From Epithemia pelagica (Eukaryota; Protista; Bacillariophyta), in contig OX337234.1 in assembly GCA_946965045.2 (NCBI GenBank), forward strand, positions 3,286,001 to 3,350,000: 64,000 bases of DNA. Direction: 5' to 3'. The notes under the pieces were generated by a model that was not told where the DNA came from, ran no database searches, and worked only from the letters and a program-made list of their open reading frames with translations. The number at the start of each line of letters is the position of its first letter. Positions within the stretch are counted from its first letter, which is position 1. The position numbers were made by a program, and so were the translations under genes. Of the stretch, positions 56,933 to 64,000 are shown piece after piece.

Positions 56933-57301
56933 ATCGCCAGAATAGGATCTTCTGACCAGTACATAGCGGATAGAAGAAGACATAGAAGTCTCCTCCTCAA
57001 GACGACGGCTTAATGTGCTCAAGCTAATCTGGCGATAAAGGCCCAAGAGACTAACTGACGAATGCACAACTGACACATCGACAGAATATGCGACTGACAA
57101 TCCCAAGACGATCTCGTGCGTATCTTGAAGATCAAAGATCTACCAGTTTGCATGAAGACGACTTTGGATTGAAAGTTGATCGGGTCACTGTCTTTCAGGT
57201 TGATTGTTGGTTGAGGTGCTATACGCTGCAGGTATTGTATCTCCTCTTGTGATCATCTGTTTTTTGTTTTCTTTCGTCGTTTACGCCCTGCCACTGCCCC
57301 C

Positions 57302-60148
57302 ATGTCGTCGTCTGGCTTTTCTGCTCGTGCTTCGCTTTATCGCGATTTGCGTTCTGGTTCGCGTACCGAGCGTTCCGCTTCTCCGGTGTCTTTTCCGCCT
57401 CCTGCTCCTCCGCTTACGTCTCCGTCTGGAGAACTTGCGGTGGCTTTGTCGGACCTCGGCTTGGGGGTGGGCGTATCGACTGGGCAGGACCCTTCGGCGC
57501 AGGGCTCTCGTGGTGCTGCGTCGGCTAGTACGGGGGGGGAGTTTGTGTCGGTGCCTTCTGTTCGTTCGTTCGGTGACCAGTTCTTAGTGGATGCCACTAT
57601 GGATCCCGGTGCGAGCACGGAAAGTCGCGAGTCTTTTTCGTTGGGCGGACTCACGGAGGCGGAGTTGCTTGCAGCTACTCTCCGTGTTGAAGCGCAGCGT
57701 GGAACGGTTCCGGAAAGTCTGAGTGAAGGACGTGCTTCATCCGCAAGTCTGTTCAAGAGCACTACCAAACCTGAACCGGTGAAGATTGCCCGGGACACGA
57801 GTCAGTTCGTGGACTATGGTCTTGCGAGCAGTGCTCCGTCGGACTCGCGTGAGGTGTCGTTCCATCCGGACGCCCGTTCCAAACTTACCAAAGGTGAGCT
57901 TCCCGCGATTGCAGAGACTAACATGAGTGTTAATTCGTCTGCCGAGTTGCAAAACTCGGTTTCGTTGATTGCAGTCAATTTAGCGGAGGATAAGTTTTGT
58001 GGAGCAGTCGTGGGGGTTGCAGGCAAGTTCTGCCTCCATCCTAAGGGACAGTGTCCCAAGAAGTCACATCGGAAAGCGACATCGTTCCTAGGAAGTCTAC
58101 GGGAACAAGGGCTAGAGGAATGTCTGTTTATTTGCGTTCCCATGCCGAAGAGTAGCAATGGTCATGGTCAACTACCTACGCTTGCTTTTCAGGATCCTTT
58201 CTTGGAATCCACCCAGTTGGGCCGATCCAAGGTCCAAGAAATGCTCCAAGCGCACAAACCAGTGTGGCTGTGGTCTTCGATGTTCGCGATGCTCAGTGGT
58301 GAGACGCAAGGTGACCATCATGGTACCACCACACTTAGTGATCTCCCCGGGACGCCGCGTCGCCACAAGACGCTCGACCAAATTCAAGCGGAGGCGACTC
58401 AGACGGCGTTTACTCCTGCTCGACGTCTCGAGTTGGAAGATGTGGAGGTCCCATCTCCAACCAGCGAGGAGAGTGACCTCGAGGATGTTGATCCTCTTCT
58501 CGATGAGGACACGTTCAGGAACCGTGTTGCTCGCAACACTGTGACGACGTCACAAGTCCAACGTGCTACAACCGCGGAACTCACGACCATGCGTTTGCGC
58601 CAATCTGAACAAAACCAGTTGTTGAATGTTTTGGTTGACAAGGTCAACGTCCTCAGTGGATTGTTGGGAGCGCCACCAGAAGATTCGGGGGCAACGACGG
58701 TGTGGCAAGCCATCAGTGAATGGCACCAGCAACAAGAAGAGAAGAAGATTAACCCGTCGCTGTTGGAAGCCATCAAGGAAACGCAAAAGTTGCATGGAGC
58801 AAGCTTTCAACGCATGTATGACAGTATCAACGCTCTGTCAAACAAGTTGCACGACACCAAGATTGAGGCTATCCATTCGTCCAGGAAGGAAGTAGTGGCC
58901 ATGCTCACAGGCGAGGTGAACAAAGCCATCTGGACTGAACTATCAAAGGTGTCACCCACGCTCAAAGTAGCAGAGAAGTTTTTTATTCGCGGCGGTCTCT
59001 CCGAATTTGAAGAACACATACGCAAGACGACAGCCGACGCTGTGCGAGCAGCAGGAGGGAACAACGGCCATTCATCGTTATTCAACCTGTCGCAAGCCGA
59101 GGTGGACAACATCAAGCGGTTGATTGTCAAGTTAGAAGAAGAAAGCGAATTGAACAAGGTTCGGCTCACTGACATCGAAGCCAGATCCGAGAATTATACC
59201 GTAGAGGTAGAAGGCCATCAGTTTTCTTCGTTGTCGCAGGTGGCGGCATTTGTTGCGTCCAATGGCGTCCCAGACTCGGTGCTAAAGTTTGTTGACGCCA
59301 TCAGTTTGATGGAAAAATCGACCACAGGTTCTCAAAGTTTCACCGAGAACGTGGACGTGCATTACCGGGGTCAACGCTCCAACATGGAGTCACCCAGTGA
59401 CCAAAAGGGGCTTTACTCCTTCCAGTTAATTGCGCCCACCGCCTTGGCTGGAACTCCTGATCAAGCGAGAAACAACCCAAGAAAGTTAGTGCGCATGGAA
59501 ACCTACCAGAAATTCAAGGGGTCAGGGTCTCGTGACATGGGAGCCGCTAACATGATCCGCAAAATGATCGCCGACAAATACCCGCCTTTGCTGTCGGAAA
59601 TTGAGGCCTCCACCATGTCACGCGAAGCAAAAGTCATAGCCCGGTTCCTTCTTTCTGAGTCTCGGAGTTTTCTGGACTCTCTTTTTATTTTCATGAAGGA
59701 TCAAGTTGAGGACTATGGGGCGGATACTCAACTCTCTGAAGTTCGCAGATGGGACCTCGTGCAAAACATCACGAGGATCGTCTTTGAAGTCATCAGCCAA
59801 CCGAGGCGTGGGTGCAGCGAGATCACGCTGAATCAAGCCACATCCCTCGAACGGGCTCCAGAGTTATTGTGGTCGGTTCTTCAATCCCACCGCTTACAGA
59901 AGGAGTTTCTGGACCATAATTTTAAGAACCATCCCAAGGTAGGGCCAATGTTGACTCACTTCTTGCTCGACGTGGTGAGCTTTCACGACGACGTCAATCC
60001 CATCGTGGACGATGTAAAAAAGGCATTGAGTGAGGCACAACAAGCAAAAAGAAAGGCAGACGCTGTGGAAAGTCAGGTCAAGAACTTACAAGGCCGCTTG
60101 CCATCGAAGAAAGCAAAGCCATCAAAAGAAGGAGCGGAAGCATCATGA
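57302..60148 (+). CDS. Retroelement ORF1 (gag-like) with a C-x10-C-x6-C-x4-H motif and coiled coils
   Basis: 948-aa ORF; CGAVVGVAGKFCLHPKGQCPKKSH at 57998-58069; lies directly upstream of the RT ORF. Confidence 0.7.
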   Translation: MSSSGFSARASLYRDLRSGSRTERSASPVSFPPPAPPLTSPSGELAVALSDLGLGVGVSTGQDPSAQGSRGAASASTGGEFVSVPSVRSFGDQFLVDATMDPGASTESRESFSLGGLTEAELLAATLRVEAQRGTVPESLSEGRASSASLFKSTTKPEPVKIARDTSQFVDYGLASSAPSDSREVSFHPDARSKLTKGELPAIAETNMSVNSSAELQNSVSLIAVNLAEDKFCGAVVGVAGKFCLHPKGQCPKKSHRKATSFLGSLREQGLEECLFICVPMPKSSNGHGQLPTLAFQDPFLESTQLGRSKVQEMLQAHKPVWLWSSMFAMLSGETQGDHHGTTTLSDLPGTPRRHKTLDQIQAEATQTAFTPARRLELEDVEVPSPTSEESDLEDVDPLLDEDTFRNRVARNTVTTSQVQRATTAELTTMRLRQSEQNQLLNVLVDKVNVLSGLLGAPPEDSGATTVWQAISEWHQQQEEKKINPSLLEAIKETQKLHGASFQRMYDSINALSNKLHDTKIEAIHSSRKEVVAMLTGEVNKAIWTELSKVSPTLKVAEKFFIRGGLSEFEEHIRKTTADAVRAAGGNNGHSSLFNLSQAEVDNIKRLIVKLEEESELNKVRLTDIEARSENYTVEVEGHQFSSLSQVAAFVASNGVPDSVLKFVDAISLMEKSTTGSQSFTENVDVHYRGQRSNMESPSDQKGLYSFQLIAPTALAGTPDQARNNPRKLVRMETYQKFKGSGSRDMGAANMIRKMIADKYPPLLSEIEASTMSREAKVIARFLLSESRSFLDSLFIFMKDQVEDYGADTQLSEVRRWDLVQNITRIVFEVISQPRRGCSEITLNQATSLERAPELLWSVLQSHRLQKEFLDHNFKNHPKVGPMLTHFLLDVVSFHDDVNPIVDDVKKALSEAQQAKRKADAVESQVKNLQGRLPSKKAKPSKEGAEAS

Positions 60149-63100
60149 GTGCAGCCAACATCAAAACAAGTACCCAGAGAAGAAGACTTAGAAGAAGACA
60201 ATGCCAAAAAGAATTGCGGCAAAGAAGCACCGATCACCGAATCTTATTCATCATGGATTCGTCGTCAGGTATCGTTGTCACCGGGAAGTTTGCGCTTGGG
60301 AATCATTTCGGAAGGGCTACCCGCATGGCTGTTTCTGTCAGACAATCTGACGAACGGTAAATTGCAGTGGTTGATGATTCCAGACAACCAGCAACACTGG
60401 GAGAATCTCATTCCAAGTGACACCGAGGTGTACTGGTTAAGAGCGAAACCAGAGGATGAACTGGGCGCAGCATCGATGGAGTTCGCATTAAAAGACAAGG
60501 CTGATTGTGATGTGATTCTTTTCGAAGGAAAGTACCGGCCTCCAAGATCGAACTCGGAGTTCTGGAAACGCTCCACTCAACTGGTATTATCTCAGCGGTC
60601 TCTCAGAGGTAAACCTCCGGTGGGGTGGACTGCATCATCACGAGTTTTGAATCATGCCCAGTTAGGCGGTGTCACTAATTGGAGTTGTCGCATGCATGTG
60701 TGGAGCAATACGGAATCAACAGTCACGCCCTTTTGGGAGGACGAGATTCTTCAAGGGGCCGACAGCTCCTTCGAGGATTTGTTAGACAAAAGACAAACAG
60801 GGAAGCGAGTACGTGAGGACTTTGAATCACCGCATTCTTCCCTCAAGAATCAAGTCGACTGTGCGACGATACAGAAGAAGAGAAAGAAATTATGGACCCT
60901 TCCCACGGTGTTTGGGTCTATGCGCACCAAACGTTGCTTGACCGTGTCTGAGGCGAGTTCGTGTTTGGATGTCCCCTCGTCTTTGGCGAAAAAGTTGAAT
61001 GAATCCACGAGCGAAGTTGTGGTTCGAGAGCTGACAAGTCCCATCAAGGTGGCAGCAGCTCTCGGAGCATGCCTTGTTGAATGGACGAAGAAACGAAGAC
61101 GCAGAGAAGAAGAGGACGACAACTCCAGTCCACGAAGCAGGGAATCGAAGCAGAGTCGGGTTCAATGCGGAGTAGCATTGACGCTCAACGCCACCACAGG
61201 TGACGGGCCCAACTCCATTGCCAGAGAGGCACCATTGTCTACCAACACGCGCCGGGACCGAATGCAAGCATACCAACGCTTGAAAGATACAGGAGCGGAT
61301 ACCACCACCGAGAAGGCCGTTAAACATGACAAAGCGGCTGTTCCTGTGGAATTGTGGGACGACAGAGTCCGTTACTTGTTGGGTCTTTCGAAGATTGATG
61401 ATCGCCACCGACGTGCCTTCACCAAGATGCGATCTGTGATGTTACGTCGCTGGAAGCGAAATGTTCTGCGATCGTGGGTTGATTGGTGGAATAAGAATAA
61501 AGATAAGATAAAACATAATGAACCTCGCTGGTGGACGTTGTTGTATGAGCGAGGATACCAAGCGTGTCGCCAAGCTTTTCAAGCAGACTTCTGGAGCTGG
61601 CCAAGCGGATCCGGAGTATTCTTCTGGCGATGGCCAACAGAATATATTCGCGACGTTGCTTTGGGAGTGCCTCCTTTATGGACAGGCGTTCCTCGCCAAG
61701 TCTTGGAACCACAACAAGGTCTTGGAGACGAGGACACAATCTCGAAGATCAAGGAGAAACTCGACGACGTACGCCAGAAGAAATACGTCGGCCCTGGGCA
61801 ATGGAAGGCAACCATGAACTATTTTGCAGTGCCCAAGGGTGAGACAGATATCAGAATGGTGTATGATGGAACAAAAAGCGGTCTGAATGACTGTTTATAC
61901 GCACCATGGTTCCCCCTCCCTGATGCCGACGTTCTGATACGAACCCTCGATGACTTCTATTGGTGTGTGGACAACGATTATGGGGAAATGTTCCTCAACT
62001 TTTGGATACATCCCGAACTTCAGGAGTTCAGTGGGATGGATCTCACGCCACTATTTGGCAAAACCGAATCGGGAGAATTGTACATTGAAGGGTGGTACAG
62101 ATGTCCTATGGGACAAAGCCCGTTTCCATTTAACACTGTCCAACAGACAAGGCGACTGAAACGCGTCATGATGGGGGATGCGGCTGACGAAGAAAACGTG
62201 TTTCGATGGGCAGGTGTACGAGTGAATCTACCAGGATCAATTGACTACCAGCCGGGAATCCCGTGGATAGCTAAGTATCGTTCGACAGGCGAATTAGCTG
62301 CGGACGCACATGATTATGTGGACGATTTACGAGGCACTGGACCCACGGCCGAGGACGCTTGGCAAGTAAGTTCCAGAATTGCAAAGACGGCCTCTTTTCA
62401 TGGCGTGCAAGACGCCGCACGCAAACGAAGGGAGCAAACTCAGAGCCCTGGGGCTTGGGCAGGTGTGGTCTGTGGAACGGAACCTCGACGTCCCTACAAA
62501 ACCATCACACAAGAAAAATAGGAGAAAACTAAGAAAGAAGTAAGCCGACTCCGAGATGAGCTAGATGCATTAGAGGACGCTTCGCCCAAGAACACTATGA
62601 ACAGCAAGACACTGGAGCAAGTTGCTGGGTTTCTCAATCATGTCGGTCGTGCATTCCCAGTCATTAGGATCTATCTAAACGGACTCTATGCGACGTTAAA
62701 CAGCTGGAGGCCTGACAGAGATGATGAGGGTTGGAAAATTGGCTCGGATACTCTTCACCTCCAAGACCCATTAGGGTTGGGAACACCAAAGCGAGTTCGC
62801 ATGGTTCCTCGTATGCGGTTCGATGTTGTGGCCCTGGAGGAGTTAACAAAAGCAGAAGCGCCGCCACGCCGCATGTTGCGACCGGATAAACAAGGAGCAG
62901 TCGTGAGATACTTCTTCGGCGACGCATCGGGTGCTGGTTTTGGGATGTCTGGATGGACGCCAGGAGACCAAGAAGTCGAGGTTGATTTTGGCGCGTGGGA
63001 TCAAAAGGCCATGAGCGGATCCTCGTCAAACTTCAGAGAATTGGCCAACATTGTCATGAAAGTAGAGCAAATGGACCAGGAGGGCCGATTAAATTCCCTG

Positions 63101-63940
63101 ACCGAAGTATTCATTTTCACGGACAACATGCATGCCGAGTCCGCCTTCTACCGCGGGACAGCTAAATCACCCGAAGTCCTCAAGCTGATGTTTCGCCTTC
63201 ATAGAGTACTGATGAAGGGAGAGGCCTTCATACACGTAGTATGGGTGGCCGGAAAGAGGATGATCACGCAAGGGACAGACGGGTTGTCGCGTTCCGACTT
63301 GACAAGCGGCGTCATGAGGGGAGAGAAGATGCTCGACTTCGTCCCCTTGCATCTCACAGCAGATCAACGCCAACCACGTGTGCTTTCGTCTTTGCTTCGG
63401 CAATTGGTCGACGATACAGATGAAATCCACGTCTTGAAAATGAGCGATTGGTTTTCAAAACCAATGGACAGCGATGGAATCTTCGTGTGGATCCCACCTC
63501 CGTGTATTGCCGATGTTGCTGTGTTCACCATGGCAGAGGCGTGGCATATACGGCCGTGGAATACGCATGTATTCATTGCACCCTCGTTGATGAGCGGTCG
63601 TTGGCGGCGGATGCTATCCAAGGCATCTGACATGTTCTGTGTGCTACCTTTTGAGAATGCAATTTGGCCAAAAGATTTGGAACACGAACCGCTAACGATT
63701 GCCTTCACTTTTCCTCTGTTAAACAGAAATCCTTGGCGAGTTAGATTCACGGAGCTTCTCCGTAATGACCGAGATGTGTTGCGTCAGATGCACCGGAAAT
63801 CTTTCGCACACGCGAGGGATTATCTGCGCAAATTATGGGTATGCGCGAGGGCATTGGAAACCCTGCCTGGGGGCGTATCACGCTCAGTGTTATGTAGTCC
63901 CGGGAGACCAGGACCCATTTCCTCGAGACCTCAAGCCTAG
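60149..63940 (+). pseudogene. Retroelement ORF2: methyltransferase-like N-terminus, reverse transcriptase and RNase H, interrupted by one in-frame TAG (62519-62521)
   Basis: RT motifs YFAVPKG..DIRMVYDGTKSGLN, DYGEMFLNF, RCPMG, YVDD (62315-62326); RNase H motifs FGDASG, NFRELAN, FTDN, GTDGLSR; ORFs 60149 and 62597 are in the same frame. Confidence 0.85.
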
Positions 63941-64000
63941 ACAATTCGAAATGGACGGGCAAGGGAATCTAGTCGAAGAAGAAGAAGGCTGGGAAACAAC
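63765..64000 (+). CDS. Start of retroelement ORF3 (Cys/His-rich N-terminus), overlapping the RNase H ORF and running off the window; candidate tyrosine recombinase ORF
   Basis: ATG at 63765 opens a stop-free frame MTEMCCVRCTGNLSHTRGIICANYGYARGHWKPCLGAYHAQCYVVPGDQDPFP... to the window end; absent from the ORF track because it has no stop. Confidence 0.6.
   Translation, partial: MTEMCCVRCTGNLSHTRGIICANYGYARGHWKPCLGAYHAQCYVVPGDQDPFPRDLKPRQFEMDGQGNLVEEEEGWET

Follow-up and report, generated by a model that had tools for sequence, protein, structure and literature searches.

Among the retroelements known to carry DNA methyltransferase domains, the DIRS-like elements of Symbiodinium encode in their Pol protein a DNMT3 domain that is detectable with the Pfam family PF00145, has kept its catalytic residues and has been shown to confer de novo CG methylation in yeast (SymbioDIRS-Dnmt3; de Mendoza et al. 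2018, PMC5890265). DIRS1-class elements, including an element of approximately 9 kb in Ectocarpus, contain a Dam-like N6-adenine methylase domain that has been described as catalytically inactive (Iyer & Aravind 2012, PMC3537659). Moreover, DAM-DIRS elements, as well as long terminal repeat (LTR) elements with both DAM and DNA methyltransferase (DNMT) domains, have been described in a 2026 preprint (10.64898/2026.05.21.726589). This paper describes a retroelement of the diatom Epithemia pelagica, located in a stretch of 64,000 nucleotides of contig OX337234.1 (GCA_946965045.2, positions 3,286,001-3,350,000, forward strand), which was analysed as a whole and is referred to as the window. A first-pass annotation of the window, made from its letters alone, had proposed a degenerate cytosine-C5 methyltransferase-like domain at 60290-61084, ahead of a reverse transcriptase (RT). 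The dinoflagellate DIRS elements to which it pointed as a precedent for DNMT capture are real (PMC5890265), and a literature search gave no paper on a DNMT-fold domain in diatom retroelements, as the annotation had supposed.

The data revealed that the N-terminal part of the Pol protein has the fold of a C5 methyltransferase, that the catalytic motifs are missing, that the architecture is conserved in a large family, and that the domain is under purifying selection. The domain is probably an ancient, selected pseudo-DNMT module in a Pol protein of the DIRS order, non-catalytic, with a putative nucleic-acid-binding part in retrotransposition.

Like the Symbiodinium elements, the diatom element is of the DIRS type, to judge from the predicted fold of its recombinase, with the C5-methyltransferase fold in the open reading frame (ORF) of Pol together with the RT and a tyrosine recombinase in a separate ORF; in both cases the RT is too divergent for the Pfam seeds and the host belongs to the SAR supergroup. 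Unlike the competent, Pfam-visible Symbiodinium domain, the diatom domain is missed by PF00145 and is devoid of motifs I, IV, VI, and VIII, and the A-B-A-B repeats of the Symbiodinium elements were not found. With the Ectocarpus element it shares a stramenopile host, a length of about 9 kb, a Gag, RT and RNase H, and a tyrosine recombinase whose N-terminus is rich in Cys, whereas the 159-bp terminal direct repeats of that element were not found. The diatom domain lies N-terminal to the RT and its C5-methyltransferase fold is structurally distinct from Dam, and no such N-terminal domain has been described in the Ectocarpus element; the counterpart of the inactive Dam-like domain may be the C-terminal domain of the diatom Pol, which is a lead only. 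The LTR/chromovirus elements resemble it in that two methylase-type domains are possibly present in one polyprotein, but they carry a Pfam-detectable, DNMT4-related DNMT, whereas the diatom element combines a tyrosine recombinase with a DNMT fold that is cryptic and motif-less, and its Dam-like domain is unconfirmed. Mammalian DNMT3L, finally, is likewise a DNMT fold retained by selection without cofactor and catalytic motifs; it is encoded by the host and works by way of DNMT3A/B, whereas the diatom domain shows no specific structural affinity to DNMT3.

The N-terminal domain of Pol is predicted to adopt a C5-methyltransferase fold

The span proposed by the first-pass annotation falls inside the fold domain, which corresponds to Pol residues ~47-325.

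60287-61123, forward strand: C5-cytosine-methyltransferase-fold domain without catalytic motifs (AlphaFold2 model residues 17-295 of window positions 60239-61168)

The structure of this region was predicted with AlphaFold2, without templates, from an alignment (A1) of 13 copies sharing 22-73% identity with the window copy, which yielded a model with a predicted local distance difference test score (pLDDT) of 80.5 and a predicted template modelling score (pTM) of 0.80. The model displays the two-lobed architecture of C5 methyltransferases, consisting of a Rossmann catalytic lobe, a target-recognition lobe, and a C-terminal motif X helix. Comparison of the model with the PDB by Foldseek returned C5 methyltransferases as all 40 of the 40 best matches (top E 4.8e-7), including C5-carboxymethyltransferase, Dnmt2, M.HaeIII, M.HhaI, MET1, DIM2, and DNMT3. 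An exhaustive VIA structure search, which is independent of Foldseek, gave M.HhaI at Z 16.6 with 255 aligned residues (model 3-292 to chain 1-327), followed by M.MpeI (15.9), DNMT1 (15.6), DNMT5 (14.2), and DNMT3A (12.6). The 19 top chains (Z 9.3-16.6) were all C5 methyltransferases; other class-I methyltransferases scored Z 7.7 or less, in alignments limited to some 130 residues of the Rossmann lobe. Moreover, a shape search of the ESM Atlas found PF00145 clusters at TM 0.67. Since the structural match spans both lobes as well as the C-terminal helix, it is specific to C5 methyltransferases, so that the methyltransferase fold suspected from the sequence is supported by the comparison of the model with known structures.

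Catalytic motifs are lost throughout the family, and other residues are near-invariant

The five peptide strings on which the first-pass annotation had built are all present in the translation of ORF2, in the order and at the coordinates claimed. The same segments could be aligned in 15 other intact genomic copies (22-92% identity) and in 150 public cluster representatives, and therefore the motif pattern is not a chance occurrence. The positions below refer to the motif layout of M.HhaI, which is well established.

60149-62521, forward strand: ORF2, open frame that is part of pol and is ended by a TAG in the window copy
60296-60328, forward strand: putative motif I position (strand 1 and loop), LGIISEGLPAW, with SEGLPA where FxGxGG is expected; glycines not conserved in the family
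60506-60553, forward strand: putative motif IV position, CDVILFEGKYRPPRSN (its first part, CDVILFEG, at 60506-60529), with Tyr in place of the catalytic Cys (FEGKYRPP where GxPC is expected)
60647-60682, forward strand: putative motif VIII position, LNHAQLGGVTNW; H in 130/133, G in 132/134, and G in 131/134 members
60932-60976, forward strand: motif IX-like segment, RCLTVSEASSCLDVP; R, E, D, and P near-invariant (R 129/132, E 126/129, P 124/127)
61040-61075, forward strand: putative motif X position, where the long C-terminal helix begins, PIKVAAALGACL; P 113/114, K 110/114

At motif I, 39% of 57 members have a G, which is followed by a variable position and a P; the glycines are not conserved over the 15 intact genomic copies and the 150 public representatives, and FxGxG is absent family-wide. 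A Cys near motif IV was detected in 18 of 158 members. The GPC form FEGPCRPP is found only in members L028, L029, and P0002, where it is a plausible relic of G-P-C, and L026 and L027 read FEGTCRPP and FEGTCRPS. The ENV of motif VI is present in none of the members, the window copy having SQR and others WIG, SDR, WxQ, and similar triplets. At motif VIII, GxPQxRxR is replaced by LGGVTNWSC in the window copy, in which the Gly is retained and the PQ and both Arg are replaced, and QxRxR is absent family-wide. The segment RCLTVSEASSCLDVP matches the motif IX pattern R.(L)T..E......(F)P, and at motif X the window copy has PIK where GN is expected. The loss of the Pro-Cys and FxGxG signatures noted by the first-pass annotation thus extends to the whole family, and among homologues a GPC is kept in the three members mentioned above and an FxGxG in none. 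Since the nucleophile, the ENV, and the S-adenosylmethionine (SAM) loop are missing, the domain is presumably unable to methylate cytosine at C5.

The family has near-invariant residues of its own, which include a Trp after strand 1, H...GGVT at motif VIII, R..E..D.P at motif IX, and P.K at motif X. Conservation within the family is strongest in the segments resembling motifs VIII, IX, and X, the first two of which the annotation had named as a check on its proposal.

The domain belongs to a large family and is under purifying selection

The 60.5-Mb genome contains 43 matches to the domain with 24-92% identity, many of which lie in open frames of approximately 1,260 amino acids. A profile search of 1.84 billion public cluster representatives detected 402 proteins at E<=1e-3, 144 of them at E<=1e-10, all of which are unnamed or designated 'hypothetical protein'. 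Full-length public homologues (1,160-1,300 amino acids) mostly have the same order of GGVT-domain, YxDD, and DASxxG/TDN/DGLSR. Several public metagenome contigs that encode full-length homologues (e.g., L048) measure 8.2-9.8 kb, close to the length of the element, which is consistent with repeats that were assembled as stand-alone units or circles.

Selection was assessed by Nei-Gojobori dN/dS estimates for unsaturated pairs only, and ratios of 0.06-0.17 were obtained for the domain and 0.04-0.15 for the region of RT and RNase H, with higher values for the flanking linkers in most pairs. The domain is therefore under purifying selection and not decaying, and the label 'degenerate' that it had been given is better read as ancient and selected. 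A recently decayed capture of a host DNMT was considered and rejected on the basis of these ratios, of lineages that diverge down to ~22-30% identity, and of the absence of sequence likeness to the host DNMTs. The elements have an observed/expected CpG ratio of approximately 1.0 and the flank one of 0.92, which leaves no methylation footprint either way.

Two other functional explanations were considered. The domain could still be enzymatically active at a site that has been rebuilt, the old cytosine pocket being lined by the GGVT loop together with the near-invariant His and an acidic residue following strand 4; it would then support another nucleic-acid reaction or transfer methyl groups in a non-canonical way. 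Conservation indeed peaks at the loops that form the active site in DNMTs, i.e., the F-[E/D]-G of motif IV and H187 with GGVT of motif VIII, and purifying selection is almost as strong as on the RT; nevertheless, with no conserved Cys at motif IV and without conservation of the motif I glycines for SAM binding, we regard a retained enzymatic activity as unlikely. Alternatively, the domain might act as a DNMT3L-like regulator or decoy that binds host DNMT or chromatin with 5-methylcytosine, thereby blocking silencing or steering integration. DNMT3L is an established example of an inactive DNMT fold that acts via protein contacts, the structural matches include DNMT3A-3L entries (Z 12.5-12.6), and the host genome has approximately seven PF00145 loci with intact PCQ and ENV. 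However, the domain is no nearer to DNMT3 than to bacterial methyltransferases, and the CpG ratio of the elements shows no footprint of heavy methylation, which makes such a regulatory role quite improbable.

Architecture of the element

The domain is part of a retroelement that was delineated with blastn against two sister copies, L022 (identity of 95.7% over 8,801 bp) and L023 (77%), which placed its start at 57009/57011 and its end at 65793 in both comparisons, so that the window contains all of the element except its last 1.8 kb. From 5' to 3' the element consists of a gag-like ORF1, an in-frame TGA, pol (~1,260 amino acids), and an overlapping ORF3; pol in turn encodes the methyltransferase-fold domain, RT, RNase H, and a C-terminal domain.

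57009-64000, forward strand: retroelement copy that extends beyond the end of the window (full copy to window-equivalent 65793, ~8,785 bp, i.e., ~8.8 kb)
57302-60148, forward strand: ORF1, gag-like, 948 amino acids, without Pfam family, upstream of pol in most copies examined
60146-60148, forward strand: in-frame TGA between ORF1 and pol, a probable read-through site (ORF1 and ORF2 are in one frame)
60149-63940, forward strand: pol reading frame, 1,264 codons with one TAG inside (intact counterpart L022:4228-8019, 1,264 amino acids)
61823-62332, forward strand: RT core, bounded by VPK...LN and YVDD (motifs read directly; no score with Pfam RVT_1)
62519-62521, forward strand: TAG nonsense codon that breaks pol of the window copy (TGG in L022)
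62915-63298, forward strand: RNase H motifs FGDASGAGFG, SSNFRELAN, FTDNMHAE, and GTDGLSRSD (read directly)
63299-63937, forward strand: C-terminal pol domain (pol ~1050-1264) with an invariant W.PPPC, candidate DIRS1-type Dam-like domain
63723-64000, forward strand: start of ORF3, ~525-527 amino acids, which overlaps pol and continues to window-equivalent 65303 (L021:723-2303)

The TGA at the junction of gag and pol is present in all 16 copies compared (the window copy and 15 others, L022-L036), which represent two deeply diverged clades. Because it is kept in every copy while the adjacent codons differ, the sequences suggest that Gag-Pol is made by programmed TGA read-through. Within pol, the window copy is interrupted by the TAG, and consequently the ORF2 taken by the first-pass annotation as the reading frame is truncated. 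Since L022 has TGG at this position and an uninterrupted frame of 1,264 amino acids, the window copy is a recently broken member of the family; three DNA read runs yielded nothing beyond short, collapsed contigs of repeats, which speak neither for nor against the TAG at 62519.

The motifs of an RT follow the methyltransferase-like region in the ORF2 frame, in agreement with the order proposed earlier, with FAVPKGETDIRMVYDGTKSGLN at 61823-61888 and YVDDLR at 62315-62332. VPK..LN, YVDD, DASxxG, TDN, and DGLSR are invariant in 11 copies. Neither RT nor RNase H has a sequence match in Pfam or the PDB, and a Pfam scan of all ORFs of the window copy and three intact copies detected no family, RVT_1 and Phage_integrase included. 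Between the methyltransferase-fold domain and the RT core lies a strongly conserved stretch, EKAVKHDKAAVP...LWDDR...RWKRN...FFWRWP (61310-61640, pol ~388-496), that belongs to no known family.

By their language-model features, the last 265 residues of pol are similar to clusters with PF05869 (0.91), and the motif of this region is PPPC, not the catalytic triplet NPP. The domain may be a Dam-like domain of the DIRS1 type; as a search with PF05869 (Dam) gave no match over the whole genome and the likeness comes from language-model features only, this reading stays a lead, and so does the presence of two methylase-like domains in one Pol.

The model of ORF3 has a low overall pLDDT of 48.7, with values of ~78-90 for residues 285-499. 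Comparison of the latter residues with known structures gave XerH (Z 12.3), Cre (12.2), XerD (10.5), and lambda Int (10.1), and for ORF3 all 29 of the 29 best structural matches have the recombinase/topoisomerase-IB fold. On the strength of this predicted tyrosine-recombinase fold, the element is a DIRS-order (tyrosine-recombinase) retrotransposon. Residues 1-290 of ORF3 (L021:723-1600, window-equivalent 63723-64600) contain invariant Cys/His clusters (C..C, C...C..H..C, and F.C..C.F) that recall the zinc-ribbon/ALOG-type DNA-binding region of the Ectocarpus DIRS1-like elements, in a part of the model with low confidence.

The ends of the element are sharp and reproducible, yet they are without inverted or split direct repeats of at least 22 bp, unlike those of the DIRS, PAT, and Ngaro elements described. 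Local alignment of the 5' and 3' ends (57009-57330 versus window-equivalent 65304-65793, L021:2304-2793) gave a best match at chance level. An open frame of 847 amino acids begins directly at the 3' end of the element (L021:2778-5318, window-equivalent 65778-68318).

Discussion

According to the proposed mechanism, the domain would descend from a true DNMT, of which the G-P-C in some lineages may be a relic, and would be carried ahead of RT, RNase H, and the C-terminal domain in a polyprotein made by read-through of the gag-TGA-pol junction. C5 methylation of cytosine would no longer be performed by the domain, which would instead assist reverse transcription or integration as a putative non-catalytic module that binds nucleic acids, its former DNA-binding cleft holding cDNA or target DNA.

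Several observations weigh against this interpretation. The case for the fold is built on a single predicted model from a 13-sequence alignment. None of 37 diverse members matches PF00145 at E<=0.1, and domain profiles of 13 and 37 sequences detected no C5 methyltransferase among PDB sequences. When alignments of 13 and of 100 family sequences were compared by hhalign with the seven host DNMT domains, the result was not significant (E 0.22-0.75). The motif positions were assigned by matching the succession of strands and helices of the model to the well-established M.HhaI layout, so that the mapping, made at the level of secondary-structure elements, is a putative one. Finally, no direct or inverted terminal repeats of at least 22 bp were detected by self-blastn and repeat search in L023:900-9901, which does not favour the assignment to the DIRS order.

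Besides these results, a PF00145 scan of the whole genome detected host loci only and none of the elements, and profile searches of PDB sequences with the family alignments A1, A3, A4, and A5 gave no meaningful match. Since sequence methods find nothing, the fold assignment rests on the predicted structure, to which the collinear motif remnants in the sequence add weak support. That the likeness is an artefact of a generic Rossmann-like fold or of model bias to a common fold would accord with non-significant outcomes in every sequence and profile comparison and with the shallow alignment behind the model, but it is very improbable, as the match spans both lobes and the C-terminal helix with a Z twice that of any non-C5 methyltransferase, the order of motifs I-IV-VI-VIII-target-recognition domain-IX-X is collinear, the sole stretch paired with host DNMTs by hhalign is that of motifs IX-X, in register (segment RCLTVSEASSCLDVP), and the relic G-P-C of several lineages lies exactly at motif IV.

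A bolder proposal, which we consider possible but rather doubtful, sees in the domain no fossil but a base-flipping module put to another use, whose new active or recognition site would consist of the His...GGVT and the acidic residue in the old cytosine pocket. The domain would then be indispensable to a clade of tyrosine-recombinase retroelements of marine protists that is large and unannotated. Such a module could be a new nucleic-acid-modifying enzyme or a reader that chooses integration sites by the state of cytosine, and it may be paired with a dead, Dam-like methylase in the same Pol.

Retrotransposons with DNA methyltransferases constitute a recently recognized and small class, which comprises DIRS and LINE elements of dinoflagellates, Gypsy elements of charophytes, and EpiLTRs. 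The diatom lineage joins this class with a DNMT fold that has been retained by selection after the loss of every catalytic hallmark. Because the fold is kept under selection without these hallmarks, it points to a role in retrotransposition other than methylation, which bears on the reason for which the active DNMT versions were originally captured. Moreover, hundreds of 'hypothetical' proteins from marine metagenomes carry a DNMT-fold domain that is missed by profile libraries, and Pfam-based surveys of epigenetic domains borne by transposable elements consequently undercount them. Diatoms are ecologically important organisms, and their pathways for silencing of transposable elements are under active study.

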